Position numbers and translations under genes: made by a program
Notes under the pieces: generated by a model
What the model saw: only the letters and a program-made list of their open reading frames with translations
Database searches by the model: none
What the model was told of the DNA's origin: nothing
In this document: piece by piece, positions 4,399 through 43,570 of the stretch
How positions within the stretch are numbered: position 1 is the first letter of the stretch
Layout of the letters: the number at the start of each line of letters is the position of its first letter
Assembly (NCBI GenBank): GCA_965202585.1
Contig: OZ241831.1
Location: 41,664,001 to 41,728,000 of the forward strand
DNA: 64,000 bases
Reading direction: 5' to 3'
DNA from: Thalia democratica
Lineage: Eukaryota

Positions 4399-5766
4399 TT
4401 TTGGTTTTAGTGATATGCAAAAAATATTATGGTTCTAGTTTTATTAACAATTTTAGGTTACTTTTATTCAGTTTGTTGTTTTAAAATGATTTTAGCTACA
4501 CATAGAATACCTAAAAAACTTATAAACATTTATTGGAATCAAAATTTCATTGACTAATATAGTTTAGTCTTAATAAACCATGTAATATTTAAACAGTTAG
4601 TAGGTTTAATTTACTGTTTTGTAGATAATAAATTATAGTACTAAATAACTTTTAAACCTAGCTTACAATACCTACAAACAGAATTCAAAAAGAAGAGAGC
4701 GGTTTGTTAAAAAAATAAAATTAAGAAATTATTTATATCTAAGTGTACTTCGACATAACTAGTTTTTTTTAAATTTTAGTTTAAATTAAGTAAATAATGA
4801 ATTGCCACGGTTTGGATTTGCAGCGTTCTTTTGCCTTTTCATGCAAGCTGTCTGTTGAAAATGGTATCTGTTCTTGAGTCTTAGTACGTACTTTACGAGA
4901 GTGCGTACCTGCTCTATGTATGTAGTGTAGCTGGTAAACTTTATATACAATGAGCAAGATTAATACAAGGATAAATAAGTGCATGTGATGAAAAAAAGAA
5001 TAGTTTGACTCTCTTGAGGTAGCCAAAATACAATATTTTCAACAGCAACATTTGAGCATCATACGCGTATACATAGTGTTACACTATTAAGAGAGGCACT
5101 TGTAGTGTGTCAGAAAGCGAGCTGACGACCTAGTCAGCTTAGGGATTTTACAATGTAAAGCTACAACGAATAAATCCCTAGACGTCTAAGCGGGTAGACG
5201 TCGTGAAGGCGGGTTGTGTGTTAGTGTGTTTGCAGGCATACAGATTATAGCTTGAGTCGACTTGGCCGTCGACTCGAGCTAGAGTCGAAAGACCGCAGCT
5301 AGGCGATCAAAGGTCGTATAGCAGACCTCATTGAATAAGCACGAAGGGAACGTAAAGCGAGAGCAAGGCACGTACCGTCCTAAGCAAGCCGTTAAGCATA
5401 AAAGCCGCACTCTCGCAAGGCAGTATATGAACGAGCTCTGACATGATTCAGCCCAGTTGAAAGTACGTTTGAGTGCAAAGATGAATTGATTAAGGAATGC
5501 ATTTCTAGAAGTGAAGCTTCGGACGGGCGACTGAAGCAGAGTAGGCGAGGTACTAGAAAATGCGAAGGTGTAGCACTCAAAATGTAACATGTAAAAAAGC
5601 GGCATAATCTCATGGTCGCTTTCAAAGTCAGAGGTCAGTTGAAGCGAAATGTTTTGGAAGGGAAGCAGGAGCTTCGAGAAAACATTTGTAAAACAGCGGG
5701 AGGTCTGTTTTTTCGAAAAGTTGTTGAAAATGAATTTTTGGGTTGTGAGAAGGGTGGAGAGAATAA

Positions 5767-5870
5767 AGAAAGAAAAGTTGGAAAAATTTTGAGCAAAAAA
5801 GCCGTCCGAATTCGCCCGCGGGCGAATTCGGACGGCTTTTTTGCTCAAAATTTTTCCAACTTTTCTTTCT
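5767..5870. repeat. Perfect 104-bp palindrome with no spacer
   Basis: 5767-5818 (agaaagaaaagttgg...gaattcgcccg) is the exact reverse complement of 5819-5870, checked base by base. Confidence 0.97.
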
Positions 5871-5873
5871 ATA

Positions 5874-6067
5874 ATTTTTCAAAGGTGTTCGACAAAAGTC
5901 GAACGCCTTTTTTTTACCCAAAATTTTTTTTGGCTACCTCAAGAGAGTCAGAGTTTTTTGCCTAGTACTATATATTTTTCAAAGGTGTTCGACGAAAGTC
6001 GGATGCCTTTTTTTTACCCAAAAATTTTTTAGGCTGCCTCAAGAGAGTCAGAGTTTTTTCCCTAGTA
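5874..6067 (+). repeat. Two 94-bp direct repeats (period 100), each with a 13-bp hairpin followed by a T-tract (also 27606-27799, 50071-50264)
   Basis: atttttcaaaggtgttcgac[a/g]aaagtcg...cctttttttt...cctcaagagagtcagagtttttt.cctagta at 5874-5967 and 5974-6067. Confidence 0.93.
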
Positions 6068-9000
6068 ATGATTATTTTATCAATTTCACTGATGTCTTAA
6101 ATTTTGAACGTTGCTGCCGAAAGGTTAGCACCATTATTTTTTATATATAATTTTGATAAAAAATGTTAGAGTTTTTAAAATTACAACTATCAATAGCCTT
6201 ATTAGAGAAATGTAGAAAATATTTTTTACTTTTGATACTTATAATAAATTAAGATTTAATTTATAAAGATATAATCAAAACAATGATAGTAAAAAGGCTT
6301 GTTTGTTATTTGAAATATGTAAGATAAAAATATTACAAATTAAACTTTATATTTCAGGTTAGAACTTTTATATTTCAAATTGAAAATAAGTTTTAATGTT
6401 CTTAACAAAATTACGCATTGAAATTTTCAACATTTTCACGTTTCTAAGACATGCTTTATTTTTTAATAAAGTTTTAAACTAATGGGAATTTACTTACAAA
6501 CGAGAACTATAAAAGTAAGCATGCCAAAAAAAAAAACTTAAGCACGTGTACATATATTACTTAACCTGATAAGATAATAAATCCAATTGTACAAACAAAA
6601 ACAAACTAAACTCGTATCTGTGCCAACGAACAACTATGTCAAAAAGAAAATTAAAAGTGTTGTTTTATAATTAGAATTTTTTTTTGTATCTGACACTTAA
6701 TGAAGCAAACTGTTTAATTCAACGTTGATACTCTTTTTAGTACTTGTGTGCAGTTTTCTATATAGTTTTCTATACAATAAACAAATTTTTAGGTAGCAGG
6801 CATTTTGATTAATTTTGTTAAACGTTTGTAATTCATTTAATTTGTTCTTAAAAATAAAAGAATATGGTTTAGTTTGTTAAATAAAACGACAAAAACCGAT
6901 AAAACATTTAGTGTAGTTGAGAAACAAGTAGCTTATGTATAAAAACGATTTATGTGATTCAATCATGTAATTTAGTTTAGTTAACATAAGGCATATTTAA
7001 GTATAGACAGCTATATGTAACTATACTGATTTTGTTTGAGTCAACTATCATAGACAAGTTCTCAATTAATGAAAAATAAAGATACTTCACATTTTTTTAT
7101 ACATGCGCAAGTACTTGGTAAAAACTTTAAATAACTAAACAAAAAGCTTGCGAAACATAGGCTACTCCCACAACTGATTTCTGAATACAATCTAGTTTCG
7201 TTTAGTTTTCTTTTATCGCTCGTTTTATTTATTTAATTATAAAGTTTTAAGTTTTAAACTTAAAACTTATCGGCTCGTTAACCATTGTAAAACCATGTGG
7301 TGTACGACTCGAAAACCGAAAAGTTCTTTCGAATACCAGGTCTTTAGAAGAAACTTTTTAATGCTTTTTTTGCGGTTCAACGAACAATAAAAAATTGAAA
7401 AGGGAAGGTTAAAAAAAAGCTACTAGACGAAGTGGTCTAACGTTTTCACGCGTTGTCAAACTCTTGTAATCAACATATTTTTCTCTATACTTAGCTAGAC
7501 GCTCAAAAATGTAACGGCGACTTTTGCGAGACTAAGTGTCTGTTTCCATTATATGATCATTAAAAACTTCACTTTCAGCTAAGTTTACTTATAGAATATG
7601 GTTTTATAAAAGCATGTCTTGGTAGTTAATTATTTTGATTTAAGTAAAGTACTTGACAAATACAGGTATTTCTCATAAAACTATTCGCAGATTTTTGACA
7701 ATTACGGACGACGCAAGTTGATTTTACGAGAAAAGCTATTGAAAACAGAAAAAAAGTCTAATAAAAGAGATGAGTACAAATTATATTGAAAATAAGAGGT
7801 ATACTCATTTAGACATTTTGCAATAGCGTTATGAACGCTTTTCAACAATCTATCTGGAGTATTTTAAAGTTATGTAATTTAACATAATCTAATGAACGTA
7901 AAGATAACTTATGAAAAATATAAAAATCAACAAACGTGCGAAGATTTAAAACTGTAAACTTTGAAAAACCGTCTTTTTTTACGATCAAAGTTAAACACAA
8001 TATTTTATTTAAACAAAGCGTCATGCGACTAAAATAAAGCAAATTTATAATTTAAACAAAAGAGTCGTTAATAATATAGCTTTGGTAGTTACAGCACAAC
8101 ACCTATGACAGAACTACTCTTATATATCTTATACTACTTAAACAACGATTACTTGTCGAATTTTTTCATGATATTAAGGTACTTCATAAAGAGAAACATA
8201 TTACAAAATAGAAGCAAATTGATTTAGTGACATTTAATTTTATACTCGTTTAATCAAAACTAACATTTAAACGGTTAAATATGTAGTTGCTATCTTGCAT
8301 AGTTGGTCATTTCATGCAGTTAGTTTTTGTATATGAACTGAAGAAAGACCTAAATAAAAATATCAGAAGCGTTATCTTTTACAAAGCTTGAGCTTTATTT
8401 AATACGCAAGTGAAAACTTCCAACAAGAAACAAAATCAAATACTAAAACTATTAAGAAAGGTTGATTTAGAAATACATTTATTTTAAGAAAACATCTGTT
8501 TAATGCTCATTCCGAAGTCAATACACTGCGAAGAACAGTCCTGGACAAAAAATTTATGTAACTGTGGCGTATTAGTTGATAACCGAAAGGTTTTTCGTAC
8601 ACCAGGTCCTTAGATCAAACTTTTATTGAGTGTTTCTATCGACGTTCAACAAACTGACTGTACATACGAACTAACTTCCAAGCATGTATAAAAATTTTGA
8701 TATATATATGGCAAGTTTCCTTCAAGTTGCGTAAACAAGTCGAACATTTGTGTAATATATTTATTAAACGGTAATAAAAACTATGCAAGCTGTGTTAGTA
8801 TAAGTGTCACTATATAATATTTCAAGAAAATTGCAGCTATACTCTGATAAATCACTTATTCGGGTAAAAATAGTTTTTTCTCAAAAACTCGATTTCATTT
8901 TATCTTTACAAGAATTCTGGACATTATGAAAAAGTTGCTTTTAAATAATGGTGATGCTTTAAAAAATATATATACTTAAGTATATTATCCAATAATCTAT

Positions 9001-12000
9001 TGTGTGTGTCTTAAGATATTTCTCTTGATAAAGATGCCCTCATAAATATCTTATTTTTAATACAACTTACATAGTACTTATACATTTGCAAATATGAACC
9101 ACAAAATATGTCCTAACTTATCGTTTCCTATCTTATGGGATCAATAAAAACTGCTACGGATAGAAATGAAGACATGTCTTCTTAAAATGAACAACATTGT
9201 ACTTGTGGAAACTTTACTAAAATTAATAGTAACAATAATTTTGCTTTAAACGACTACTTTAAATCAATTAAATAAACTAATTATCAAACCCAGAATTATT
9301 AACTCTTAAACCTAAAAATTATATAACAAACATTAAATTATAACTGACTGATAGTTTAATTTGCGATAAAACAAAAATATTTATATAAAAATTGAGATTC
9401 ATTTCCGGTTGTTGCCCGTCCAGTTGCACAAACTGTTCTTCAGATCCAAGTTGCTTCCTTTAAAATTTATTTATAGTTATACTACTTAATACCATATAGA
9501 CTATTATGTTTTTTTGTTTGTTTAAAACTCTATTTGGTTGAAAAAAGACTAATTAAATATTATTTAGTTTTTAAGCATATTTTTCGGTTTAGTATAAATT
9601 AAATGCAATTCCGTGCTATTAATAAATAATACAGGCACAACTGTTATTAGATACACAAAAAGTAGCAGACTAGCTTAAATTAATTTTTACAATAGTAATT
9701 TTTTAAAAACTTAAATAATGTCAAAGGAGTAAACTAAAACAAAAATATTTTGGAGACTTAAATTTAATACTAATAAATCACATAAAAAAAGCCAAAAATA
9801 ATAAGGTTTTACTACTAATTACGTATTTAAAATACTTCATAAACATTAGTTTTACACTGAAAACGATAAGATACATATTAAATTAAATACTTTACCATTA
9901 CTCAGAGACGATTATAAGTTTATTAATTCGGTAGACTAAAAATAATAATATTTTAGGTGTTAGGGATATAAATTATTTTGACTTATATTTCATATATATT
10001 TATGTTAATCGAAAATTGTTAATGAAAAAACATTATACTGACGTGGAAACAAATACACCAGTGATTTAGCTCGATTAAAAGATGTAGTCCTTTTATCAAT
10101 GTTTAAATAGATGTTTAATTAAAAACAAAGCATTGTCTTTGAAAAAATTTACAACCTACTAGAAATTAAATAAACATTAAAACACTATCTGAAAGCATGC
10201 TGTTTAAATAAAATGTTAAGTTAACATTACAAAAAATACTACGTTAAACCACTATCAAAGCTGCTACAATTTTCACACAACTACTTGAAAAAGACTTACA
10301 TCTTTAACTAAATAATAAATAAACCGGTAGAACTTTTTTAGTAGAGAAAGCTATAAACGAGTGTAAACAAAATTACTTCATTTAAAATCATTTAAAATGT
10401 ATGTATATGCATTTAGTATTTAACATTAATATTCTAACAAAACTTAGTAAACTATTACTAAATTTAAATAAAAAATATTGACAAATACATTGCATTTTTA
10501 TTGAAGTAGAAAACTTTTCTAAACACACTTATCAACTACTGTTGTGTTTAACTAAGCTATAAATAGTATTAACATGTATTAAAGTTACTTATTGGTTACT
10601 TCATTATAAGTTTAAATAAAAATGTGAAATAAATACTGTTTAAATAAAAATTTTTTGAAAATTAAATAGACAATACTTTTTAAGCATAAGTTAATAGAAA
10701 ACAACTTAAGATGGTAAAAGGATATTACAATAAAGTATATACATATGAAACTTTTAGAGTCAATAATAATAATAGATAAGGCTATGAAAACATTAGAAGT
10801 AAAATATAATCATCTGAACTTAAATAATTACTTATGTAAAAGGAATAAAGCAAGTTATGTATTTAAAAACTAAAATTTCAGAACATGTTATAGTATACTT
10901 ACGCAATTAAAAAAAGTATTTAAAGTAAACTGAACAAAAATATTTAAACATTAAAAAAAAACAACTATAACAGTTTGTACAAGTTAGTATTGTAAACTAT
11001 TAATAAAAAGAATATGTTATTATCTATACATAGTAATACTTATTCATTTAACATAACTTTTTTCCTTTACATTAATTTGGTAAAAAAAGAAGTATTGCTA
11101 TGTAAAAGTATACTAAAAATAAAAAATATTTTAAATTAATTACTAATAAATTTTAAAGTTATTTCTATACTTTCTTTTATTAGTAAAATTATTAAAATTT
11201 TATTAAAGGCTGAAACTTTTTAAATATTGACTCTCTAATAAGTCAAGTATGTTAATCAATAATTCTAACTACCTTTCTTAACTCCGCCAGTTGATAGTTT
11301 GTAGCGCTGATAGAGGTCACTTCGGCTTACGTGTGTCATCAAAGCTCCGTGTCACTCAAACTTATTTCCTTCCACAACATGTTTACTTGACTGTAAAATA
11401 AATATATTATAATTCATACACATTTGATTAAAGTTTTATAAAAATTGAAATAACTGGTTAATAATCTAACTGTTTTAAAAAGTTAACTGATTGTTAAAGT
11501 TTGTGCGAGTTTAAAACTAAAAAAAACTTACTTGGACACACAAACTTGCTAAACTTAAACCTTGAGACTTCCAGTCTCCACAGTGTGCTCAGTAGGGTTC
11601 ATAAAAATTATTTTACTGTAAACAACTAATCAAGTCAGATGAAAAATGTGTTTGTAATTAAAGCTGTTTTCTTTTGTGAATATTGGAAAAGTCCAGTTAT
11701 AACATAAATTTTAAAAGTTCTTATTTTTAGACATTCAAAAGATGACAAAACACTGTCTTTATAGTGAATTGTCCACAACTTTAGTTTTATTTATTTAGTT
11801 TGCACAGCTTCTGAAAGCATAAAGACCACTATGACCTGCAAGCACAATAGAAGTAAACAGTTTTTAAATATACTAATAAAAAAAATAGCATATTAAGTAA
11901 TGTGTTACATAAAATGATAAACTAGTATCAAAGTGTCATTATTGCTCCTTCTCTTTTTTACTAATAACAAGTTGCAATTTAATAAAACAAAACAAAGAGC

Positions 12001-12221
12001 ATAGTTGCACAATTTAATTTTTTTTAATAAACTTTAAAATGTATCAGATGTCAAATTATAGATGGCTACAATTCTTTTTTGTAAGATAATGAAAGTAAAG
12101 TTCTGACTTTTTAAAGCTACCTAGATAAGGTTATGAGTTTTTATGTTTAGTTTAAAATCTTCACCAACTCACTTTTAAATCTATATAAATTTTCTAAAGC
12201 TTTGATGTTATTGTTATACAC

Positions 12222-12473
12222 CAGGGTTTCCCAAACTTTTTTACTAATGGCCCCCTTCAACATATAGGTTACTCAAAAACTACGAAAAAATACACATATG
12301 AGCTTTTTTTTTGCTCTTCAACTGCAACTCCAGAATATCTAGTGTAAGTTTCAAGTTATAGCCTCATGGCCATGGCCCCCCTGTGGCTCCTTTACTGCTC
12401 ATGGCCCCCCCTCTTCCCCCTTTGCTGCTCATGGCCCCCTAGGGGGCCACTTTGCCAACTTTGGGAAACCCTG
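12222..12473. mobile_element. 252-bp hAT-type MITE
   Basis: 14-bp perfect TIR cagggtttcccaaa/tttgggaaaccctg, 8-bp TSD ttatacac/ttatacat (7/8 match), and internal ctcatggcccc repeats. Confidence 0.88.
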
Positions 12474-15124
12474 TTATACATCATAAAAACTTAATGGATC
12501 AACTTAAAATTTAAATATAAGGATCTATTTGAAACAAATGTCTCCAAGTGCAGTAACCTCTTCAAAAATAAGGACCTGTTTTGCAACTAGAACTTTCCTT
12601 TAAAAAGAAGTGTAATCATGTAAAATAATTTTTGTTTCATAATAAACCTTGCTTCACAATCATATTTAGTATAAAATTGTAGGTTTGTTTATAAATTAAT
12701 GTTTAAAAGTTTCACCACTATCAAGCTCCCATTATGTGAATTCAAATTATTTAAAATTAAGTTTTTTTAATGTTGTTTAATCTATAATATCATTTGAACA
12801 TAACATTAACATGGTTGTCACCTTTTAGAGCAAAAAAAGCTTGAAAAGACAGTCTGAGTAGGGATAAAATTTTATAAAAAAATTAATTATAACAGTAATA
12901 ATAATCAAGCTCAAATACTAAAATAATATAAATAGGACTTGATAAAAGATTTGTTTAAGAAAGAATATGTTTAAATTCCTTATATTTAAGAAAAGTGTAC
13001 AAACTATCTAAGTTTTGAAAAAAAAATGTACAAGCTTAAGTTTACTTAGCTGGGTGGCAATTCTGCTTAAGACATTTGAACAAAAAGTTCAAAAGAGTAT
13101 TTGATGTGTCACTCTTAAACTAAAACTTTGACTAACCTAAATATAAATTTTTCCCTTAAAAGAAATCAATCTTAAGTAAAACATTAATGGGCAGTTGTAT
13201 GAAAAGTAGTAAAAAATCAAGATTGTAGTCCTGACAGAGATAAAAAAAGGTAAAACTATGAAAATTTTTATATAAAATGAGAAAAATTAAAGGCAAAAGT
13301 GGAAGTAGTACTAACATGCATAATGAAACTTTACTAAGGTTGAGAAGCCATTGAAAAATCTTTATTTTAGTTCAAAAATTTTTTTAAATGAACTTCAAGA
13401 AAAAAAATAACAAACTGAAACTTTTGTAGAAATCTGTTTAAGTGTTAATAAATTTACATGTTTGTTAGTTAATTAAATTAATGCTAAGTTTAAAACTTAA
13501 ATTGACAGAACTTTGACAACTATAAAAGTATTAAAGTTGCACATATAATGGGACACTGGAATAGATATTTTTGAAGCAGGCTCAATTAATGTTTAAATTT
13601 TATTCATATTTAAAACTGTGCATTATTTTAAAATAAAGTTCAGTATACTATTTGACTAACTTAATTTAACAGTGTGGCCACTGGTTTATTGTAAATTTCT
13701 TCCAGATTTTTAGATATAATTTAATTGTTTATTTTTACTATATAATTAAAACTATATTAAAAACAAATGTCTAAAACACTATAGTATCATTAAATAATAC
13801 TATGGTTATAATTGTTTGTTTTTATTGATAAAGAATTTTATTTTTTAGAGAATTTTTATATCTCAACAAAATTTTACTACTTCACATGTAAAAGTAGTTC
13901 TAAATTCCAGGTTTTTTAGAGGTATTTGTTCAAAACTACAATTTTTTTCAAATTTCACTAACTACAGGTTATGCAGGGGTTTTTGTAAAATTTGTCTAAA
14001 AAGTCAAATTCCAGGTTTTTCAAGGACTCCAGATTTTTTTAGCACCCTGTTTTAATTATATTTTGTACCTTTAGTGATTTAGGTAACTATGATTGTATAC
14101 AACATAATAGTAACTGTAACAAAATTTAGAATAATGTCTTTTAGTATGATGTTAAATTTGGTACAAAAACTTGTAAATACAAAAGCAAATTTACATACCT
14201 TGAAAGTTTGAAAAGGGAGTTATTCCTGTGGAGCTCTGGGTTTCATTTTGTTTAGGATGACTTTCATCATTGAAGATCAGGAGGACAGTGAATATAGTTC
14301 TAAAAATTTATAACCTAAAATTAACATAGAATAACAAAATTTTTAAATAAATTTGTAGAGAAGTTTATTCAATTTTACAGAATAATTTGATGTCATGGTT
14401 TAAATGTCACAACTTACTTGGTTTTAATTGAACATGCCTCTGTGCCAAGGTATAAACAATAAGAGACAACAATTGCTTTTTTTTCACTACAAATAATGAA
14501 ACAACCATTTTAGAAGTGTTAATAAACATTTGAAAATTCGCTAAAAACTAGTACCAGAGAACAGTTTTACAATAAACACAAAAAAGGCATATTAATTTCT
14601 CGCTAACCTTTCAAGGCTTAAATAACTTAAAGTCAAAAATTGCAAAGCACAAAGTTATAAGCAATAAATTATCATTAAACCTAATAGTTTTTTTTTCAGA
14701 GCTTTATTTTTTAGCAACTGGATTTTCATAGTTATTGAGTAAGTAAATATATAATAGTTTGTAAGCTAAGAGCGCTTTGTTAATGATATAATATTTTATT
14801 TTGTTGTATAACATTAAATCTACTTTTAAAAAGACTAGTATTAAACAAAAGACAAGACCTGTTTAGGAAAAATATGAATTACAAAAGCTTTACTTTTATA
14901 CTACTCAAGTTTAAAACCTAAACATTAATGTTTGTTATTCATACGTTTTTTTAAGTTAATATTTTTTAGTTATCGGCAATAAATAAGTAAGTTTCAGCTT
15001 AAAACATTAGTAAACAATGATTAAAAAAATGTACTAAAATATTACAACTAGGCTTATAATTTTGTAGTTCGTAGCTATTTATTATATTATTATTATTAAA
15101 GCGTTAAAAAACCTTAAATTATAA

Positions 15125-15770
15125 GTCAAGGGACAGATATTTTACCACCAACCTAGATCAATGACAAGGATATCGCAAATGTGAAACACTTTGGATACCT
15201 TAGCTTCAGACTCCCACCCGTTGATCAAACTCATAGTTAGACACAGAAATAACTAGTCGCATAGGTAAGGCCTCAGGCACTTTCGCTTGTTTGTCTGCAA
15301 GAGTATGGGGTAACCAAAGTTAAGCATTCTTACAAAGTCTAACGTTTATTGTTCCTGTGTATGCAGTACTCTGCTATACGGTAGCGAAATAAGGATATTT
15401 ACTAGCGTCCTGGAGAAGAAAAAACAATACCTTTCATTAACAATGCCTTTGTCGCATCCTTAGAATTGCATGGAATCAAAAGATCACCAACGAGGAAGTG
15501 TTGAGACGTACTTGTGATACTACCATGTGGTTTACCCTCAGTCAGCGCAGGTTTCGCTGGGTCGTTCATGTTCTGAGGATGAGTGCTGAGCGAATCCCAA
15601 AGTTTGTCAATTGCACACGCTACAGAGGTCGTCCAACATTACGTTTTAACGACGTATGCAAGCGTGACCTAAAAAGCTGGAATATAAGAACTGGTGAATG
15701 GGAATCGTTTGCAAATGACCGTGCCAAATAAAGATCTACTGTTAACAAAAGTCTGAATGAAAGGAAAAAA
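15125..15770 (+). mobile_element. 5'-truncated, decayed RTE-clade LINE (C-terminal reverse-transcriptase region)
   Basis: Fragments LDTEITSRIGKASGTF..L..RVW, TK..VY..CV.STLLYGSE, FH..CL.RIL.I.W..KITNEEVLRR and RGRPTLRFNDVCKRDLK, interrupted by stops and frameshifts. Includes track ORF 15498-15731. Confidence 0.85.
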
Positions 15771-17232
15771 GAACTTTAAGAAAACGAAAAAATGAAATGA
15801 GAAGCGCAATGAATTTTATCAATTTGATTTTATTTATTTGTATTTTTATTTACTATTGACGCTTTTTTTAAATGTTTGTTGGATTCTTATAGTAATCTGT
15901 TATAGTTATGCTTAAGTTGGATCTTCTTGTCAGTTACATAGTTAGAATTTTTTCAAGGCAAGTAAATTTTAAAAATTAGACCTGCAAAAATTTAATATTC
16001 AGATATCCAACTATTACAGTTTATAAGTTATGCTGAAGTCTAGCGCTGCGGTTGTTTACAAATCTGTTACTTTTTTATAGTCAATTAGCTTTTATTTTCA
16101 GCTTAAGAATTTGCACAAGTTGTTCTATAACTTGCACAGGCCTACTTAGATAACCAAACTTATACAGAAGTTAGGCGAACTTGAACATTTTTCTTTTATT
16201 TCTAATCTTCGTATACCATAAAAAGTAACTGAAATTTTAAAGAAAGTTTACTAGAAGAGATTTGATCTCATTTTTTTAATTTAAATTTCAAAGGTTTAAA
16301 AAAAGTTTGTTGGTTCCCAGCAAAATTTACTGCTCTAAAGTTGAACTGTCTCTCAAAATAAACTGAAAATGTGCCAATTATGTAGTCAACAATACTACCT
16401 AAAACTTAAAACTTTTTGAATTATGCCGCTTTTATAACAAGTTTTTACAAAAAATGAATGTTAATTACAACTGATACTTAAAAAACTTCAACTTCAGCAA
16501 AACAAACTTATTTGTATTAAGTTTTTTGAAACTTTACCTGAACATTGTACTAAAAATATTCTTTTAATTATCGAACGTTGGCTAAAAATTAATTTTAAAG
16601 GTAAAATACGTTTATACAATTAATTTTAGAAATAAAAATTCTATAAAACCAAAAACTAATAAACTTAATTAAGATATCAGCCTTTGTTTTATCTTTTTAT
16701 AGTGAGTCTTTAATTACAACTTATTAAAAGCATAATAGAACAACAAATACATTGTTACATTAGCGGTTATTATACACAATGGAAGTTAAAAGTGAAAACA
16801 GATATGTTAAGTTACTAACTATTTGATTAAAGTAAACGTTTTCCGTATTCGTAAATTAAATCTTTGTTTTTGTTGCATAAATTATTTTATTATTCATGAA
16901 AGTCACAAGCTAAACTTTAAAAATATGATGATTGACCTAAGAAACTATTTGATATTTTTCTAATTAAGTTAATATTATTCAAGATATTGGTAAACTTCGG
17001 CCTATGGTAAAAACGTAGAAAGCAAACTAAAAACTGCTGCAGGTACTTTTAAGCTTAAACTGTACTTGTTTGAAACAATTTAGAAAAAGTTAAAACCCAA
17101 AACTTATTGATAGTTATTACTCAACTATTGTTTTTTGTTTAAATACCATTTATTTAGAATTTAGATAGTTATATTTATTATGATTAAAATATTATTGAAA
17201 CAACTGCAGTCCCGCAAGACTTATTTTTATAC

Positions 17233-17885
17233 TAGGGGTACGCAACGTTTTTCTATATACGGGCCGGATCCGGAAAAAATTATTCTTTAGCGGGCCGGAG
17301 CATTTTGAGTTAGTGATTTACCGGATCCAGCCGAATAATGAGTTTTTAGATTTGAATCCGACTAGATACTTATTTTAAGTCGAGATACGGATCTGGTCGG
17401 ATTCTTATGTAAATAAAAGTTTCGGATCCGGCCATAATTTAATTTTATGGATACAGTTGATCACTTTTTTACATCCTTCAAATTGAAAAAACTTTCTCAA
17501 GTCTGACAACTTAAGATGTAGATTGAGACATGTCAGAATTTTAAATAATGTCTATAAGTAGAATTGACATTGTAATTGACAAAGGTACGTATGTAAAAAA
17601 AAAAACACTTTGCTTGGGATATTTCACTAAAAGATATTCTAACTAATTTAGAGCAACACAAAATATTAGGACAAAATAGTGTGTTTATTAGTACACATTA
17701 TTTTATAAAGTAGTTTTTTATCATATTTTTTTAGTCAAATTCTTACAGTGATTTGTAAAAATATGATACAAAGTTTTATACAAGTTTTGTAATATTGACC
17801 CTTTGCAGGCCTGTAAATTTTCTAGCGGGCCAGTAATTTTCATTTGCGGGCCGGATCCGGCCCGAGGGCCGTACGTTAGCCACTT
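17233..17885. mobile_element. Degenerate hAT-like non-autonomous element with a nested ~155-bp MITE at 17312-17465 (also 38965-39617, 61430-62082)
   Basis: Ends are taggggtacgcaacgt and gggccgtacgttagccac, with subterminal gcgggccggatccgg motifs. The inner element has imperfect TIR agtgatttaccggatcc/ggatacagttgatcact (13/17). No TSD found. Confidence 0.55.
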
Positions 17886-18612
17886 TTTAAGGAAGCTTGG
17901 CTTGTTACTTGTAAAAGACTGCTGACACCTGTTTGTATACTAGTTTTTAATTTAAACATAATATTTTAATTATTTAGATCAATCAAATATTACGACAAAT
18001 ATCTCTACTACAGGGTTTTCAAAACTTTTTTTAAAAAACCCCTTTAAAGAAGTTAAAAAAGCTATGGCCTCATCCAACAAGATTTTTCGAAAAACTACCA
18101 TTAAAAGCAATTAATTTTTTTTAGCTACTTAACATCAACTTTTTGACTAGTAGTTGTAACTTAGATAAAGTATTTATGTTACTGTTAAATATAAAAAGGT
18201 AAAAAAAGCTACACTAACAATTCAACAACGACTGAATGTTTCGGGGAGAACCTGTAGATAAAAAGCCACTCAAGGGTTTGATCTGGACAAAGAAATGAGG
18301 AAATCTTTTACGAATGTAAGGGGTTGCTGCTAAGTAGAGCGATAGGTTGCATTTCGACTGAAATGATGCAATATAAGACGTAACAATTGGATGAATAGCA
18401 AACTTCGACTTAAAAGATGAAAAAGATGACGTAACAATTGAAAATCTTCGTAATTTTAAAATGACACAATACTGGCAACTTTGTTCCTTACATTACGGGA
18501 AGCGCGCTGCATTAAGCAAAACTAAGCTTTTATGCCAAAATTATTCAAGAAAATTAGCTTTCCTTTTGGGGAAAATTTACTTTTGCGCTGAAACTTCATA
18601 CACTTTAACTGG

Positions 18613-18800
18613 GTAAGCTGTCAAATTTGCACGAGCGTACAAAATTGCACGAGTGCACAAAATCGCTAAAATAAACTTTTGCACGAAGACACTATGCACG
18701 AGGGAATAAAATTGCACGACAATACATTTGCACGGGTTATTTTTTTCTTATTTAATTTATTTTTTTTATTATCACTTTTTACCCTAACGCTTACCCTCGG
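18613..18800 (+). repeat. Cluster of six tgcacg motifs, probable subterminal repeats of a DNA transposon (also 40345-40532, 62810-62997)
   Basis: tgcacg recurs six times within ~110 bp after gtaagctgtcaaat. No matching opposite end found. Confidence 0.5.
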
Positions 18801-20882
18801 TCGAAGAATCGAAACGTAGATGCCTAATAAAGTTTTTCATACTGTAATGAAATCAATATTTGATTTTATTATTTTAAATAAATAAGTTAAAAAGGAGTTT
18901 TTTGTTTCGACGGCGTAAAACATTCATAATTCTTAGAAATAAGTTATTTTAAACCGAAAACAATAATGAGCTTTCTGAAAACAATTTTCCAAGTTTTTAA
19001 AACATCATTGTTTACTCGAAGAAGTTAGTTTCTTTCCAGTGCGTGTATATTGGTGTTTGTGTTTCAAATACGCGTTAGTTAGTTAAGTTTTTGTGCGTTT
19101 CGTACGCCGTCTTAAGTCACGATGATGATCAACGCAACATCAAGTTAAGTTCAAGCCAATGAAGTAAAATCTACATCGAAAAAAGTATACGTTTTCTAGT
19201 GAAGAATAAGTTACACATTGTCAAGCAACCAGAACACCTAGTCGTGTCTAAGAACATGAATCTAAACGAGTTCCTTGATCGAACAATTCATTGTCGAGAC
19301 CATAAGTATTTTTGCATACATTTTATTATAATAGACCATTTGTTTATTAACTAATACAGTTCTTTCTTGAGTTTTAAAATGCTACTTGACATTAATTCAT
19401 AGAGCGTTTCAATCATGACTTGGTAACAAGTTACTTTAAGTTTTGTAACTTTAGTATTGTAAGCTGCTTTTAAGTAAAGCAGTCAGTTTAGCTTAAGTAC
19501 TTAGAAACCATGTTTAAGACGATAAACATAATCAGTTTAATAAATATTGTTCTGTGGTTATAATACTTTACTATGTTTTCAATAATATTTAATTCAATCT
19601 AAAACGATGTAAAAAATGTTTATCTTTAAGAAGTAGCAATAATTGGGTTATAACTTAACAATACTAAATACAAAAAAAAAAATTGTTTAAAAAATAATGA
19701 AGATTAACAGTTGTACTCCAAAAGCAAAAAATAAAAAAAGGATCAAAAAAAATATATGTTTGTTAAAAATAAAATCTATTAAAAGGTATAGAAAATTTAT
19801 ATGTATAAATTTTTTTTGCCCTTATAACTATATTTTAACCACTAAAAATACACCTAAAATTGAGTTTTTATTCTTAATAGTTTAAGTTTACTAGTTGTAT
19901 AAAAGGTTTTTTAATTTGGTCATAATAGGACCCGTAATTAACCTGTTTTCAAGGGCAAACTCTTATTGTCTTGTTTTGTCGAAACCATGTTACAAGGTTT
20001 TATAAAAATTTCGTAATATTATCTTTGGCGGGCCGGATTTCACAATGTGCTTTTTTCACATTTTATATTGTAAAAACGTGTTGCAAATTTATCTAATTTT
20101 TTTTTCGTACTGATTGTTTAAGACGTTGTGGTTAGTTTTAACAAGTTACTGATTTTATTTTGCTGAACTATGATTTTTTTATTCTATTTGAAAATTACTT
20201 CTATAATGTCTTAAAATAAATTATAAAAGTTATTGCTAGTTGCTTATTTTACAGAACTAACTGCACGAAAACTTTTCTCTATAGTTATTTTATTTAATAA
20301 GTAATATTATATATATTAAAACCTTAGAAACCAATCATAGAAAAAAAATAAAAGGACTTCTTAAATGATAACAAGTGTTATGCAGAAATTTGAGACATGA
20401 TTAAATCAAAAACATAATTATTTAAACAAAAAAGTAAAATGGATTTTAAATAACACTTATCAACTACTAGTTTTTATGATTGTTGTTTGTCGCTTATTTT
20501 ATATATTTATCGTATTTTTTGTTTTTATTTTTATACGTTTGCTTATCTTAGTTAAATTACTAATCAATTTATCTATAATTATGTAATTATAAACTGGTAA
20601 TCTGTCTCTAATTGATTTTGCTTAACTATGCTAATTAGTATTAATTGAATATTTTCTAATTAAACCTCTAAATGTTTATTTACTCAAAATTTATCTTTAA
20701 AATTAGTTGCTAACAAAAGAAGTTGATAATTATTAGCTAAAATCGATTTTACTTGTTTGTTTATAAAAATATTTTTTTAAAGGAATCATGTCTCAAATTT
20801 CTAATTAACATATGTATTACAAAAAAGTTATATAGTAGCAAGTAAAAATAATTATGTTATGTTTATTTTATAATTTGTACGC

Positions 20883-21838
20883 TTAATTTTTTTCGGTCTC
20901 TAGTGACGTATTTCTCGATAAGCAGTTTTTTGAATTACACGCACAATCAAAATCACGAAAATACCCTTCTCCGTACCAAATGAAGAGTTGCTCACTAGCT
21001 CTGATAGCTTTTTTGCTGATGATAAAGTTCCTAGGAATTCCATTGATCAGAGCGTACTCTGTCCTGCAATTTAATTTATCTTCGCAATCGTGGTTAATGA
21101 ACCTGGTATGGTTGCCCATTGCGCCCGCGTCAATATCAAAATTCGTGCATGTGCTGAAATAGTAGTTGGTAGCCCCTTTATTCTCACGCCACCTTTTAGT
21201 CTTTTCTTCTTTTGAAATAAGCTCGCCTGTATACTCTCCTATTATTGAGTCTGAAAATCAACAAATAATAAGTTTAATATCCAAGCTAGTAGTTTAATTT
21301 AAGAATTATTTAGTCAAAATTTTCATTATAACAAAAAAAAGTTGTACATTGAAAAAAAAGTTAAACAATGAAACTTACTTGCTGGTATAGCATGCTTAGC
21401 GAACAGCCCACGGCCCATTTTACCACTAAGATTGTCCACATAAAAATGTTTTTCAGGATCGTCAAGGCAGTCATGATTGAACTTTTTTAAACTATCCAGT
21501 TCAATAAAAGAAGCTACATGTTTTATCTCATCCAAATAAGTATCGCTTCCAATCACGAGGTGGTTCGTCCAAACATGATGCTTCTCTGTATTGAAATGAT
21601 AGTAAGGATCAAAAACGTCGTCAGGCCCTTCCTTGAATGTCCTTTTAACTTCGAATTTTCCCTCCAAAGCAATTTTCTTCCATTTTTGCTTGCTTGACGA
21701 TCGTATTTTAATGCTGAGTGGTGCAAATTTTTTCAACGTATTCCTGATTGGAACACTTCTTATAACGGCCTTCCTTGCTGTCTGCTTTTTGTAGCTTTTT
21801 ATTCCTGATTGCTTATAAAAACTTGTTTTTACTGGCAT
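20883..21838 (-). CDS. SET-domain lysine methyltransferase with post-SET Zn motif, 275 aa, 2 coding exons: complement(join(20883..21250,21379..21838))
   Basis: Donor GCAA|GTAAGT at 21378 and acceptor TTTTCAG| at 21251 define a 128-bp phase-1 intron that joins the two track ORFs in frame (460+368=828 nt). Product reads ...MGRGLFAKHAIPANSIIGEYTGELI...NYYF...IDAGAMGNHTRFINHDC...AIRASEQLFIWYG...FDCACNSKNC, i.e. GxG, EYxGE, RFINHxC, catalytic Tyr and CxCx4C motifs. AATAAA lies ~16 nt after the stop (20862-20867). A probable 5'UTR intron spans 22141 (CAG|GTATGG) to 21870 (CTAAC...TTTATAG|). Confidence 0.92.
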
Positions 21839-23561
21839 TTTATAGTTGAGAAATTTAGCATATAAATGACTATAAATATGTTAGATAAGTAATTTAAGAA
21901 ACTTATACTGTTATAATATATTTTATATCCGCAGTATGTATCATAAGTTTATCTAAAGCTTGAAAATTTCGAATGATACTTCAACCTTTTTCATATAAAC
22001 CAGGAAAAACAAATGAGTTATTAGATAAAAATCTAAAACATTATACATAAAGAGTAATATACCAGATTTTATAAATAAAACAAGTTATTATTAAATTGAG
22101 TTTTAGAAAATTCTGAATTTTAAAATGTTATTATACCATACCTGATTCCCACATCAACAGTTTTTTTTTTTAAGTGTTAAATAAACAAATTAAAATAGCA
22201 ACTATTATCAAATCCCTGTAAAAGATGATTAATAATTGATTAAGAAAATGAAGGTAGAGATGGATACCGAACTCAGATACAAAAACCAAGTTGTAAGAAA
22301 TGCAAGAAATGATAATAAACTATCAACCTAGGAAAAGATAATTGTCAATTAGAATATAAAATGCAATTGAAGCTTACAAAAAAAGAATAAGTTACAGCAG
22401 ATAATGAAAAATAAACAGCAGGTCTTATCAGTAATGAGAGAAAAAAGTATACTGTGAATCATTGCTAGTGAAACTGCAAAGCATGAAAAAAATCTGTTAT
22501 CTAATGTTAACAAAATTGAGAACTTTCAAAGGAATTTCAATTTTTAAACACAGGGTGTATCAATTGAAAGATAATGAGAAATCTAAAAATACTAACAAAG
22601 TATTACTAGAAAATAGTATTACTGTTCAACAAATTTATTTAATATTATTATTAATTTAATAAAGTGTTGGAAGGAACAAAAAAGAAAGTTAATAAAATAA
22701 TAAACATTTATAAAATTAAACTTGTTAAATATAACAACTTTAAACAAAATGACTGTTCACTTGACTTATTATATATATACACTCCTAAAACATAAATCTA
22801 ACAACAAATATAACTACATAACCTGAAACTTTATCTATACTAAGTTAACTTAACACTAACCTTAACAACTGAAAACAACTTTTTTTATGTTCGCATGCGT
22901 GTAATTGAACATTTGTGGTTTGTGGTGTGACCTCAGAACTCGAGACAACACTGTTGGGCATAGTATTTTGAGAGAATTTAGGGTTTTATAACCCGCGACG
23001 AGTTCAAAAGACTTTTTTGCTTAAATAATTTTCAAATGTTTAGGCTAACCCAGAACATCGACACCTTGTGATGAATTTCCCGTATTTTTTTTAAGTCTTG
23101 TTTTTCTAAAAGCGAAATGGTGCAATTCCGTGGATTTGAACTTACCAGGAACAAAAGAACTAGAAAAAACTTACCAGGAATAAAAGAAGGCAGGGATATA
23201 AATCTAAAAAAAGTAAAGAAAACATTTAATGCTAAAGTTTAATATAAATGAGGTTAAAATTAAACTATGTTTCTCAATAACAGAGTTTTTATTTGTTCTC
23301 TTTCTAACAATAAAATAAACAAAGAATACTTTTCAAGTGAGTCATATGATTTTTTAAATTGTTTTTTTCGAAATACTTTTTAATTTTTGTTATGATCAAT
23401 ATAAAGCTTTTGATAGTAATAGTGGTATTCTAATTACAGAACTTAATTTTGATATTGAGACTGGACAAACTTTTGTTAGTTCACAATACATATCTAGTAA
23501 CGTTAATCCATTTTAGTTTATAGTAAATGAAACTGAAAAACTACAAATATAATAAGATAAA

Positions 23562-26700: not shown

Positions 26701-26821
26701 GGATAAATAAGTGCATGTGATGAAAAAAAGAATAGTTTGACTCTCTTGAGGTAGCCAAAATACAATATTTTCAACAGCAACATTTGAGCATCATACGCGT
26801 ATACATAGTGTTACACTATTA

Positions 26822-27867
26822 AGAGAGGCACTTGTAGTGTGTCAGAAAGCGAGCTGACGACCTAGTCAGCTTAGGGATTTTACAATGTAAAGCTACAACG
26901 AATAAATCCCTAGACGTCTAAGCGGGTAGACGTCGTGAAGGCGGGTTGTGTGTTAGTGTGTTTGCAGGCATACAGATTATAGCTTGAGTCGACTTGGCCG
27001 TCGACTCGAGCTAGAGTCGAAAGACCGCAGCTAGGCGATCAAAGGTCGTATAGCAGACCTCATTGAATAAGCACGAAGGGAACGTAAAGCGAGAGCAAGG
27101 CACGTACCGTCCTAAGCAAGCCGTTAAGCATAAAAGCCGCACTCTCGCAAGGCAGTATATGAACGAGCTCTGACATGATTCAGCCCAGTTGAAAGTACGT
27201 TTGAGTGCAAAGATGAATTGATTAAGGAATGCATTTCTAGAAGTGAAGCTTCGGACGGGCGACTGAAGCAGAGTAGGCGAGGTACTAGAAAATGCGAAGG
27301 TGTAGCACTCAAAATGTAACATGTAAAAAAGCGGCATAATCTCATGGTCGCTTTCAAAGTCAGAGGTCAGTTGAAGCGAAATGTTTTGGAAGGGAAGCAG
27401 GAGCTTCGAGAAAACATTTGTAAAACAGCGGGAGGTCTGTTTTTTCGAAAAGTTGTTGAAAATGAATTTTTGGGTTGTGAGAAGGGTGGAGAGAATAAAG
27501 AAAGAAAAGTTGGAAAAATTTTGAGCAAAAAAGCCGTCCGAATTCGCCCGCGGGCGAATTCGGACGGCTTTTTTGCTCAAAATTTTTCCAACTTTTCTTT
27601 CTATAATTTTTCAAAGGTGTTCGACAAAAGTCGAACGCCTTTTTTTTACCCAAAATTTTTTTTGGCTACCTCAAGAGAGTCAGAGTTTTTTGCCTAGTAC
27701 TATATATTTTTCAAAGGTGTTCGACGAAAGTCGGATGCCTTTTTTTTACCCAAAAATTTTTTAGGCTGCCTCAAGAGAGTCAGAGTTTTTTCCCTAGTAA
27801 TGATTATTTTATCAATTTCACTGATGTCTTAAATTTTGAACGTTGCTGCCGAAAGGTTAGCACCATT
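26822..27867 (+). ncRNA. Candidate structured RNA element, copy 2
   Basis: Same sequence as 5090-6135 (offset 21732). Confidence 0.5.
27499..27602. repeat. Perfect 104-bp palindrome, copy 2
   Basis: Same sequence, offset 21732. Confidence 0.97.
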
Positions 27868-42614: not shown

Positions 42615-43570
42615 TTAATTTTTTTCGGTCTCTAGTGACGTATTTCTCGATAAGCAGTTTTTTGAATTACACGCACAATCAAAATCACGAAAATACCCTT
42701 CTCCGTACCAAATGAAGAGTTGCTCACTAGCTCTGATAGCTTTTTTGCTGATGATAAAGTTCCTAGGAATTCCATTGATCAGAGCGTACTCTGTCCTGCA
42801 ATTTAATTTATCTTCGCAATCGTGGTTAATGAACCTGGTATGGTTGCCCATTGCGCCCGCGTCAATATCAAAATTCGTGCATGTGCTGAAATAGTAGTTG
42901 GTAGCCCCTTTATTCTCACGCCACCTTTTAGTCTTTTCTTCTTTTGAAATAAGCTCGCCTGTATACTCTCCTATTATTGAGTCTGAAAATCAACAAATAA
43001 TAAGTTTAATATCCAAGCTAGTAGTTTAATTTAAGAATTATTTAGTCAAAATTTTCATTATAACAAAAAAAAGTTGTACATTGAAAAAAAAGTTAAACAA
43101 TGAAACTTACTTGCTGGTATAGCATGCTTAGCGAACAGCCCACGGCCCATTTTACCACTAAGATTGTCCACATAAAAATGTTTTTCAGGATCGTCAAGGC
43201 AGTCATGATTGAACTTTTTTAAACTATCCAGTTCAATAAAAGAAGCTACATGTTTTATCTCATCCAAATAAGTATCGCTTCCAATCACGAGGTGGTTCGT
43301 CCAAACATGATGCTTCTCTGTATTGAAATGATAGTAAGGATCAAAAACGTCGTCAGGCCCTTCCTTGAATGTCCTTTTAACTTCGAATTTTCCCTCCAAA
43401 GCAATTTTCTTCCATTTTTGCTTGCTTGACGATCGTATTTTAATGCTGAGTGGTGCAAATTTTTTCAACGTATTCCTGATTGGAACACTTCTTATAACGG
43501 CCTTCCTTGCTGTCTGCTTTTTGTAGCTTTTTATTCCTGATTGCTTATAAAAACTTGTTTTTACTGGCAT
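42615..43570 (-). CDS. SET-domain lysine methyltransferase, copy 2: complement(join(42615..42982,43111..43570))
   Basis: Same splice sites and identical ORF translations as copy 1 (offset 21732). Confidence 0.92.

Follow-up and report, generated by a model that had tools for sequence, protein, structure and literature searches.

The window analysed here, a stretch of 64,000 bp, lies inside a head-to-tail array at C7:41.618-41.735 Mb (contig C7 of Thalia democratica), in which a block of ~22 kb is present in about six copies. Viewed chromosome-wide, the array consists of five full units and diverged edge units. The units are 22,465 or 21,732 bp long, and direct repeats in the window are spaced 22465 and 21732 bp apart. 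Each unit contains an intact, histone-methyltransferase-like gene on the minus strand, whose two exons encode a SET/post-SET protein of 275 aa, and a GC-rich island of 1.05 kb without genes (45% GC vs 27% for the unit), which we call a mini-rDNA cassette. The window holds three of these cassettes and only two complete SET copies, since the third SET gene starts ~1 kb past the window end. The features are the following:

1-22465, no strand: tandem unit 1, 22,465 bp (self-BLAST vs units 2 and 3)
22466-44197, no strand: tandem unit 2, 21,732 bp, without the 722-bp dispersed repeat
44198-64000, no strand: tandem unit 3, truncated where the window stops; 19.8 kb align to unit 1 at 99.97% identity
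2259-2980 and 46456-47177, no strand: 722-bp dispersed repeat, found in 4 of 6 array units
5006-6055, plus: mini-rDNA cassette copy 1 (the island), of a family of 74-100% identical copies at many loci
5006-5027, plus: left 28S patch; in blastn-short vs the rDNA unit all positions (22/22) match the R2/I-PpoI/Pokey target region of the animal's own 28S rRNA gene
5038-5095, plus: copy of the rDNA start region, 33 nt at 97% and 58 nt at 86%
5096-5766, plus: GC-rich body, 45% GC, with several local hairpins
5767-5870, no strand: perfect spacer-less palindrome of 104 bp, an exact reverse complement of itself
5884-5915, plus: hairpin and T-run, repeat 1 (terminator-like), read in the sequence
5929-5955, minus: right 28S patch, inverted, 26/27 identical to 28S
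5984-6015, plus: hairpin and T-run, repeat 2, within a ~100-bp direct repeat of 5869-5968
6032-6055, minus: third 28S patch, inverted, 22/24 identical to 28S
6400-15200, no strand: non-coding 'backbone' common to other cassette-bearing arrays, without a Pfam domain
20883-21250, minus: SET copy 1, exon 2 (SET and post-SET, stop included), Pfam SET 7e-16
21379-21838, minus: SET copy 1, exon 1, ATG at 21838 and GT at 21378; 153 codons + 1 nt
21770-21787, minus: KQTARK, residues 18-23 of the SET protein, equal to histone H3 residues 4-9 (read from the translation)
26738-27787, plus: mini-rDNA cassette copy 2, 100% identical, offset +21732
42615-43570, minus: SET copy 2 (exon 2 42615-42982, exon 1 43111-43570), 100% identical DNA, offset +21732
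49203-50252, plus: mini-rDNA cassette copy 3, 100% identical, offset +44197

Self-BLAST gives 99.2-99.97% mutual identity for units 1-3 of the window, so that the original prediction of at least three near-identical, recently amplified head-to-tail copies of 22 kb is borne out. The shorter length of unit 2 is due to the absence of the 722-bp repeat, a sequence with many copies of 79-96% identity on every large contig (6781 first-look candidates). Along the array the core units are 99.2-100% identical and the edge units 93-98%; a nearly identical core with diverged edges is the pattern expected from concerted evolution. The window is part of a tandem segmental duplication whose units are kept homogeneous, and the small SET-domain genes around it on C7 form a large cluster that is specific to the lineage. 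The remainder of each unit contains much non-coding and transposon-derived DNA. SET was the only intact Pfam domain among 64 stop-to-stop frames of at least 50 aa, a scan that genes with very short exons could escape; this agrees with the earlier description of the rest of the unit as decayed TE or intron-like DNA. One weak Pfam match in the backbone (Reb1_MybAD, 6700-6876, minus strand) was judged spurious. The backbone at 6400-15200 recurs at 85-92% identity in an array at C7:36.5 Mb and at 68-84% in one at C2:21.6 Mb, and also as a single copy at C7:40.5 Mb.

The SET gene, predicted earlier to be spliced and intact, is indeed an open two-exon frame. Its intron is GT..AG and of phase 1, and the predicted splice junction IPA|N|SIIGEY is exactly the junction in full-length database homologues. 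Exon 1 encodes a basic N-terminal tail and a family-specific domain without a Pfam match, and it is 45-93% identical to the database proteins P0001-P0012. The translation of exon 2 contains the motifs NHDC, FIWYG and CxCx4C. Values of dN/dS are 0.16-0.31 for exon 2; for exon 1 they are 0.26-0.52 in five of six paralogue pairs and 1.13 in the remaining one. These values point to a SET gene under constraint. KQTARK is retained in four close paralogues and retained or duplicated in P0001-P0005 and P0009; P0007 differs by one residue, and in other homologues the motif is loosened to KQxxRKS. The best PDB matches (EZH1/2, NSD3, SETD2 and EHMT1) are nearly level, all near 1e-14 to 1e-10, and therefore the protein is not assignable to a KMT subfamily. 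In the genome-wide scan the family is lineage-specific and occupies more than 50 loci. Among SET-domain lysine methyltransferases with built-in histone-like motifs, G9a/GLP carry an automethylation site that mimics H3K9. Our protein shares with them the canonical SET and post-SET core and an H3-like stretch, here KQTARK in the basic tail, conserved and sometimes duplicated among paralogues. It differs in being a small stand-alone protein of 275 aa without pre-SET, AWS, chromo or other reader domains.

The cassette reads in the order 28S patch, copy of the rDNA start region, GC-rich body of 0.65 kb, palindrome, and hairpin/T-run stops that are each followed by an inverted 28S patch. For comparison, the animal's own rDNA unit was identified by Rfam. 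The start-region copy comes from ~470-530 nt upstream of 18S, where the AT-rich spacer turns into the GC-rich leader, and aligns with a score of 79 (14 ± 2.4 for shuffles); the copied segment is presumed to be the Pol I start region, i.e. the promoter. Just past the 3' end of 28S the real rDNA has four hairpin/T-run elements with the same architecture as the cassette stops, a resemblance of architecture only and not of sequence. Because of the 28S matches of 22/22 and 26/27, the 58-nt start-region match and the hairpin/T-run architecture like that of the rDNA end, we interpret the island as a gene-less cassette derived from rDNA. An Rfam search of the cassette gives no family above threshold, ribosomal and ribozyme families included, and similarity of the body to the real 5' ETS is undetectable (score 19 vs 20 ± 2.4 for shuffles). 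The original prediction of a GC-rich folded island with a perfect palindrome is confirmed: the 677-nt body folds better than shuffles (z = -2.9, 20 shuffles), and the palindrome has a GC-rich centre with an A-run upstream and a T-run downstream. The proposal that the island is a structured guide RNA fared worse, as covariation gave it no support. The RNAalifold covariation term is +3.8 and a double change occurs in 7 of 151 pairs, so that a conserved RNA fold of the body is unsupported.

What is conserved are short DNA motifs. The 18-nt core of the left 28S patch is 97% conserved over 15 lineages and the 22-mer of the promoter core 96%, while linker and body range from 66 to 81% (linker 66%). 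Between arrays, cassettes are 88-94% identical where their flanks are 68-84%, and 94-99% where the flanks are 85-92%, i.e. the cassette diverges two to three times slower than its own flanks. In 13 copies the palindrome arms vary from copy to copy by substitutions and indels, and yet the two arms of a copy match each other, with a single mismatch in one copy. It is the slow divergence, the well-kept motif cores and the self-matching arms that make the cassette appear constrained.

There are at least 175 exact matches to the promoter 22-mer in the genome and about 200 cassettes. Among the 100 copies listed, 82 lie 14-37 kb from another copy on the same strand (1.3% expected at random), and most locations are macro-arrays of 14-37 kb units with one cassette per unit and varied gene cargo. 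The cargo includes a Pkinase exon at C1:93.2 Mb (1.4e-20), a Phospholipase B exon at C2:21.6 Mb (1.7e-14) and a SET exon at C7:9.4 Mb. One cassette per unit is found in at least four arrays whose cargo differs and whose units are unrelated apart from it; the arrays at C1, C2:22.1 and C5 have nothing but the cassette in common with the 22-kb SET unit. Three cassette arrays share backbone DNA and are therefore not independent. There are also SET arrays without a detectable cassette, e.g. roughly 10-kb units at C5:14.12-14.19 Mb, so the cassette is not necessary for array formation. It is important to note that clustering alone is expected of any sequence that was caught in a unit before amplification.

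Several known elements have similar links to rDNA. The R2 family of non-LTR retrotransposons depends on Pol I co-transcription in rDNA. R2 and its short internally deleted derivatives have the 28S target region in common with the cassette, but the cassette has neither an interruption at the cleavage site nor an RT ORF. In the assembly 6 of 257 left-half 28S sites lack a contiguous right half, and R2-type occupancy is therefore at most about 2%. Like the cassette, rDNA orphons and spacer satellites are parts of the rDNA unit that occur away from the nucleolar organiser, often as arrays (general knowledge; see also the review PMC10946416). They are fragments or short-unit satellites, whereas the cassette is an ordered composite, conserved motif by motif, with a spacing of 14-37 kb and genes in between. 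The Pokey/mPok piggyBac elements of Daphnia are tied to the 28S site, carry repeats derived from the intergenic spacer and have copies in and outside rDNA (PMC3849761; PMC10946416). The likeness lies in the link to the 28S site and in the rDNA-derived sequence. Pokey has piggyBac terminal repeats, TTAA duplications and a transposase and interrupts the 28S site, whereas the 28S patches of the cassette are uninterrupted and inverted at both ends, and the site in Thalia democratica reads TTGAGG, not TTAAGG. No piggyBac-type terminal repeats, duplication or transposase were found in frames of at least 50 aa or at the cassette ends.

One reading of the original prediction made SET and island a possible functional pair, with the RNA or palindrome of the island guiding or regulating the methyltransferase and selection for SET dosage behind the amplification. 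In its favour, SET is intact and constrained, and the two occur together in the array at C7:41.6 Mb and in a second one at C7:9.4 Mb, which is also found on C982, an unplaced contig. However, the island is largely what that prediction had named as evidence against itself, a dispersed repeat at many unlinked places: most cassette arrays carry other genes and no SET, and there are SET arrays and clusters without a cassette. Moreover, the SET matches at C7:9.4 Mb from the genome-wide scan have in-frame TGA codons near their ends, although the SET-domain frame is open for 119 aa in L022, covariation for an RNA is lacking, and SET and cassette lie 5.4 to 15 kb apart in both diverging and converging orientations. 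The genome-wide distribution thus already largely refutes the pair, which we regard as very improbable. Another reading, which we consider extremely unlikely, makes the 22-kb unit a large selfish or mobile element, or a circular amplicon that has re-integrated, with its own histone methyltransferase. The near-identical head-to-tail copies would fit such an element, and the inverted terminal patches and the palindrome superficially resemble element ends or an origin. Nevertheless, the frames of at least 50 aa yielded no gene for a transposase, an integrase, a reverse transcriptase or replication, and neither element ends nor a target-site duplication around the cassette were found; the units all occupy a single locus whose edges show graded divergence, and elsewhere in the genome paralogous segments match the unit in part only and have ragged boundaries.

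The cassette could also be a passenger, i.e. an old rDNA-derived repeat or dead non-autonomous element that was present in a few ancestral units and was multiplied passively by a general tendency of this genome to tandem segmental duplication, its conservation being due to gene conversion among copies or GC-biased repair rather than to function. Arrays without the cassette, the common ancestor indicated by backbone homology of three cassette arrays, the missing conserved RNA fold and the left edge of the C7:36.5 Mb array, which lies off any cassette, are in line with this. Motif-specific conservation (97% and 96% against 66%) is hard to obtain from conversion alone, and the slower divergence relative to the flanks and the single cassette in each unit of at least four arrays with otherwise unrelated units also speak against it; we consider this explanation rather unlikely. 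Ectopic arrays of DNA that binds Pol I factors form pseudo-NORs. With this precedent, the promoter and terminator copies of the cassette might recruit Pol I factors such as UBF or TTF-I-like proteins, so that the cassette, instead of being a recombination element, would act as a nucleolar tether or boundary that sets the expression of its cargo, SET included. Conservation in short DNA motifs rather than RNA pairing and one regularly spaced cassette per unit speak for such a role, but the strictly kept palindrome and 28S patches are left unexplained, and we find it improbable.

The mechanism we favour retains the earlier idea of the palindrome or island as a recombination trigger in a form that is independent of SET. 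In yeast HOT1, rDNA-derived sequences at an ectopic site make the repeats on their flanks recombine in a Pol I-dependent manner (PMC4470286). HOT1 (a Pol I promoter and the Fob1-bound terminator/replication-fork-barrier region) and the cassette both join the start and stop regions of rDNA without rRNA genes, and in the cassettes this kind of pair sits once per unit in homogeneous tandem arrays. The differences are that HOT1 is an experimental construct, whereas the cassettes are about 200 natural copies on many chromosomes of an animal, and that they add 28S patches and the 104-bp palindrome, absent from HOT1. In cis, the cassette may work as its signals do in genuine rDNA, by Pol I-type transcription, by the stalling of forks at the stop elements, or by both. 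Following the yeast HOT1/RFB paradigm, this would promote recombination, copy-number change and homogenisation of neighbouring DNA, with the array growing and being homogenised via unequal sister-chromatid or homologous exchange.

Based on this analysis, the chances are about even that the cassette is an rDNA-like cis-acting signal that promotes recombination and homogenisation of the surrounding DNA. The pairing of SET with the cassette looks incidental, and the unusual part of the unit appears to be the cassette. As other genes occur in cassette arrays and some SET arrays have no detectable cassette, SET looks like cargo, and it would have been amplified as such whether its dosage is useful or not.

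At about 27% GC the window is AT-rich, and a bump of higher GC recurs along its length. Self-comparison resolves three head-to-tail units, 1-22465, 22466-44197 and 44198 to the window end, which are 99.2-99.97% identical. When pieces of the unit were mapped back onto the 802-Mb assembly, in which the window is G000:C7:41664001-41728000, five full units were found at C7:41.62-41.73 Mb; the original prediction of at least three nearly identical head-to-tail copies is thus borne out. A sixth unit is split at unit position ~4460-4620 by ~26 kb of other DNA. Identity among the core units is 99.2-100%, while the leftmost SET copy with its surroundings is 93-97% identical and the sixth unit, past its interruption, 97-98%. 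A uniform core with diverged edges is the pattern that unequal exchange and conversion leave behind; we read the array as maintained and not just young. Unequal exchange would both have given rise to the array and have kept it homogeneous. The 722-bp dispersed repeat responsible for the difference in unit length is present in only four of the six array units, so it has been either gained by spread or lost inside the array. Thousands of candidate copies of this repeat occur genome-wide. The last partial unit ends at unit position ~4620, ~390 bp short of the expected cassette site, a single case to which we give no weight.

Features of the repeat unit (window coordinates)
2259-2980 and 46456-47177: 722-bp dispersed repeat
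5006-5027: left 28S patch, 22 of 22 bases identical to the animal's own 28S
5038-5095: copy of the rDNA start region, 10 bases past the left patch, 86-97% identical to rDNA ~470-530 nt before 18S
After the cassette body: perfect 104-bp palindrome, then two hairpin/T-run repeats
5929-5955 and 6032-6055: right 28S patches, inverted, matching 28S at 26 of 27 and 22 of 24 bases
21838..21379 (exon 1) and 21250..20883 (exon 2), minus strand: SET gene copy 1, with a GT..AG phase-1 intron between the exons; 275 aa predicted
21770-21787: KQTARK in the SET protein, identical to H3 residues 4-9

The exons of the SET gene were searched one by one, and natural database proteins were used for whole-protein analyses. 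Exon 2 matches Pfam SET (PF00856) at 7.1e-16 (59 bits, cutoff 22.4 bits) and the full-length homologue P0009 at 1.7e-21; exon 1 has no match in Pfam. The NHxC motif and the conserved tyrosine of the ELxFDY-type motif are present in the exon 2 translation as RFINHDC and EQLFIWYG. NHDC and the FIWYG tyrosine are invariant in the family alignment and align with the same motifs of EZH1/EZH2. The post-SET zinc motif CxCx4C is found at the C-terminus (CACNSKNC), its three cysteines being invariant in 10 homologues. Judged by profile and motifs, the predicted product is a putative SET-domain protein lysine methyltransferase. The closest solved structures (EZH1/2, NSD3, SETD2 and EHMT1) all score at about 1e-14 to 1e-10, and we therefore leave the protein without subfamily assignment. 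An AlphaFold model of P0009 from a 10-sequence alignment was too poor for use (mean pLDDT 37), and the protein atlas returned generic small SET clusters only. Among close paralogues the SET exon has a dN/dS of 0.16-0.31. For exon 1, where counts are small, five pairs out of six give 0.26-0.52 and the remaining pair 1.13. Two exons, the Pfam match, invariant motifs and the low dN/dS of the SET exon agree with the original prediction that the spliced SET gene is intact. The H3-like KQTARK is retained in four close paralogues and retained or duplicated in the homologues P0001-P0005 and P0009. It is one residue off in P0007, and other homologues have the looser KQxxRKS.

Twelve relatives came out of a word search that used the open frame of exon 1. 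Four of these are full-length, with 270-295 aa, and are encoded on JGI contigs ~0.9-1.0 kb long. The full-length relatives continue unbroken across the predicted exon junction (IPA-N-SIIGEY), which means that their contigs are intron-less and most likely derived from transcripts. Such contigs would be indirect evidence that members of the SET family, not the array copy in particular, are expressed and spliced. The family occupies more than 50 loci genome-wide, including a cluster at C7:41.57-42.08 Mb; in the genome scan, the SET copies at C7:9.4 Mb show TGA codons in frame. In a sequencing run with another organism label (X3), SET exon 1 is found at 98.4% identity on contigs and similar piles of cassette-like contigs occur, both of which indicate presence only and not copy number. 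Window positions 21499-22332, exon 1 with upstream DNA, are ~98% identical in this run, and contig depth over the exon exceeds that over its flanks. Copy number there could be different, a property that contigs themselves cannot show. Metagenome contigs scanned with P0009 and with the cassette motif gave no match to either.

The original prediction regarded the rest of the unit as decayed transposable-element or intron-like DNA. This stands in so far as SET is the only real Pfam domain among the 64 open frames of at least 50 aa in the unit; no transposase, integrase, reverse transcriptase or replication gene was found in these frames by Pfam. Two plus-strand frames have presumed resemblances to mobile elements, 15441-15728 to the C-terminal end of LINE ORF2 and 1142-1387 to a Penelope-type GIY-YIG fragment; neither has a Pfam match. 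The stretch 15261-15422 is also present in the C1:93 Mb array. Reb1 binds Pol I terminators, which would fit a location beside the cassette, and a Reb1_MybAD match at 6700-6876 (minus strand) was examined for this reason. With 21.3 bits against a cutoff of 27, and with stops and frameshifts in the C2 and C982 copies, the match is spurious.

The GC-rich island (5006-6055 in the first unit) turned out to have an rDNA-like anatomy. Copies at 74-100% identity are found in many places, and an inverted 18-22-nt repeat that borders the island occurs 514 times in the genome, compared with none for the control. Evenly spaced matches of the border repeat along unplaced contigs pointed the way to the rDNA. 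The rDNA unit of this animal is ~15.1 kb long and carries on one strand 18S, 5.8S and 28S; U2 and U5 come next in the spacer, together with 5S in two or three copies (Rfam; G000:C26:5001-25000). rDNA is also found on C37, C79, C100, C141 and many small contigs, with ~257 assembled copies of 28S. In the Rfam-annotated unit the border repeat of the island is located inside 28S. The stretch matched by the left patch is the region used in other organisms by R2, I-PpoI and Pokey; the 28S of this animal has TTGAGG in place of the near-universal TTAAGG. The alignment of the start-region copy scores 79 against 14 +/- 2.4 for shuffles, and the copied segment is where the AT-rich spacer becomes the GC-rich leader. 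From this position only, it would be the promoter. No similarity is detectable between the 0.65-kb body and the real rDNA leader (5' ETS). Four hairpin/T-run elements lie directly past 28S in the real rDNA. The terminator-like repeats of the cassette have a like architecture, a repeated GC hairpin with T-run, although in sequence the two sets show no similarity. At the Rfam gathering score no 18S, 5.8S or 28S gene is present in the window, where 28S occurs as patches of 22-27 nt only. A presumed start signal, filler and stop-like signals enclosed in 28S patches make the island a gene-less mini-rDNA. Among contigs from three runs of unrecorded type, those of rDNA type join the cassette precisely where its start-region copy lies, with loose ends at 26770. 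In some cassette copies (L046, G000:C1:41900500-41903500, and L051) a pair of 28S patches meets head to head, and the perfect 36-38-bp palindrome that results recurs every 279 bp.

None of the mobile elements considered accounts for this anatomy. An R2-type 28S retrotransposon or its deleted derivative was rejected, and a SIDE reading along with it: the patches cross the cleavage site uninterrupted, the unit has no reverse transcriptase domain, and no ribozyme or Rfam match reaches threshold. Only 6 of the 257 28S left-half sites are without a contiguous right half and every patch is uninterrupted, which makes an R2-type use of the patches unlikely. Spacing of 28S sites is irregular at C26 40098-71743, C37 50101-78968 and 109138-143597, and C208:15616, as would be expected if a few rDNA units there had been rearranged or had gained insertions (~+1.5 kb and +4.3 kb). 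A Pokey-type piggyBac element, TIR transposon or MITE was also rejected. Despite the inverted 18-27-nt 28S patches at the cassette ends there is no target-site duplication, the outer flanks are conserved among copies, and the site is TTGAGG, not TTAA. The nearest conceptual relatives are HOT1 and the spacer repeats of Pokey (PMC3849761, PMC10946416). The cassette is a genuine oddity, a novel variant among rDNA-derived elements.

Constraint on the cassette is seen in comparison with its surroundings. It is 88-94% identical to the C2:21.6 Mb copy with flanks at 68-84%, and 94-99% identical to the C7:36.5 Mb copy with flanks at 85-92%. By motif, conservation is 97% in the patch core, 96% in the promoter 22-mer, 66% in the linker and 66-81% in the body. 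Folding of the body is more stable than that of shuffled sequence (z = -2.9); together with the 104-bp palindrome this confirms the GC-rich folded island described in the original prediction. The accompanying reading as a structured RNA gains no such backing. RNAalifold on the body from 15 lineages gave a positive covariation term (+3.8 kcal/mol) and double changes at 7 of 151 pairs, each in a single sequence, so a conserved RNA fold is unsupported. At the gathering score Rfam found nothing over the window; permissive thresholds gave sub-threshold, hairpin-driven miRNA/sRNA matches on the palindrome, and the tRNA search found none. In each of the 13 copies examined the palindrome arms agree over 52-57 bp, a single copy having a single mismatch, and substitutions and indels between copies are always mirrored in both arms. 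Selection may act on a hairpin or cruciform, or else one arm may serve to correct the other. On either view a structure at the level of DNA is what matters. The symmetry fits a DNA-level process as well as it fits a structured RNA.

The cassette-type promoter 22-mer, one base off the rDNA version, occurs 175 times in the genome. With so many motif copies the island is essentially a repeat dispersed over hundreds of unlinked sites, an outcome that the original prediction named as speaking against it. In 82 of the 100 first-listed places a same-strand neighbour lies 14-37 kb off (median 27.7 kb), compared with 1.3% under random scatter. Large cassette arrays are found at C2:92.6-94.0 Mb, C4:78.5-79.2 Mb, C6:65.8-66.1 Mb, C1:93.2-93.4 Mb and elsewhere. 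The largest run seen, C2:92.58-94.01 Mb, has ~31 copies spaced mostly 24-46 kb apart and grouped in blocks whose orientation alternates. Units of the C1, C2:22.1 and C5 arrays have the cassette alone in common with the window unit. The C1 array carries a protein kinase exon (Pkinase 1.4e-20; L026:4807-5163, C1:93.27 Mb) and the C2:21.6 array a phospholipase B exon (1.7e-14; L024:4773-5063, C2:21.66 Mb). Among the open frames of the cassette arrays examined, SET was met again at C7:9.4 Mb only. The window unit shares the 10-kb backbone to the right of its cassette with C7:36.5, C7:40.5 and C2:21.6 Mb, and no SET gene was detected nearby at those loci. Conversely, the SET array at C5:14.1 Mb has no cassette motif. 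This array (G000:C5:14120187-14188711) is a tandem of about nine SET paralogues with a unit of ~10 kb, exon 2 being 57-58% identical. The linkage of SET and cassette is loose only, and the idea that the two form a functional pair is unsupported, given cassettes in arrays with other cargo and a SET array lacking the cassette. The SET array of the window is an ordinary though clean case of this genome's habit of amplifying blocks of 10-35 kb.

The cassette, whose anatomy, distribution and constraint are matters of observation, would act as its counterparts do within rDNA. The rDNA-derived HOT1 of yeast, when placed at an ectopic site, causes Pol I-dependent recombination of flanking repeats (PMC4470286). 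By analogy, the cassette would supply ordinary chromosomal DNA with signals for Pol I start and for stop/fork barrier, perhaps also with 28S patches that can be nicked, and the 15-35 kb around it would then behave like an rDNA repeat. Indirect pointers to such HOT1-like action are the 82 of 100 listed copies lying in arrays and the homogenised array core as against its diverged edges. A driver role for the cassette is nevertheless doubtful, and we regard as rather unlikely the full proposal, in which it is a portable rDNA-type module of amplification and homogenisation that may build and keep many gene macro-arrays (SET, kinase, phospholipase B and others). The cassette may instead be a pure passenger, which we hold to be possible, if only tentatively. 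Against a driver role, arrays without the cassette exist and gene arrays are frequent in this genome; several cassette arrays are of common descent, and the notion that array edges coincide with cassettes was unsupported at C7:36.5 Mb, where an edge lies elsewhere. That the cassette is a chromatin element or nucleolar tether seems quite improbable.

Even on a modest reading, what seemed a meaningful pairing of enzyme and RNA is a side effect of the way in which this genome amplifies DNA. The window supplies a clean, young and homogenised SET-gene array as an example, and the H3-like tail of its product merits biochemical study. If it is true that the cassette turns ordinary DNA rDNA-like, an animal would have in it a natural device, acting in cis, by which genes are amplified and evolve in concert. 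Such a device would tie the rDNA copy-number machinery known from yeast to the birth of lineage-specific gene families, and a defined 1-kb element would be available to test.
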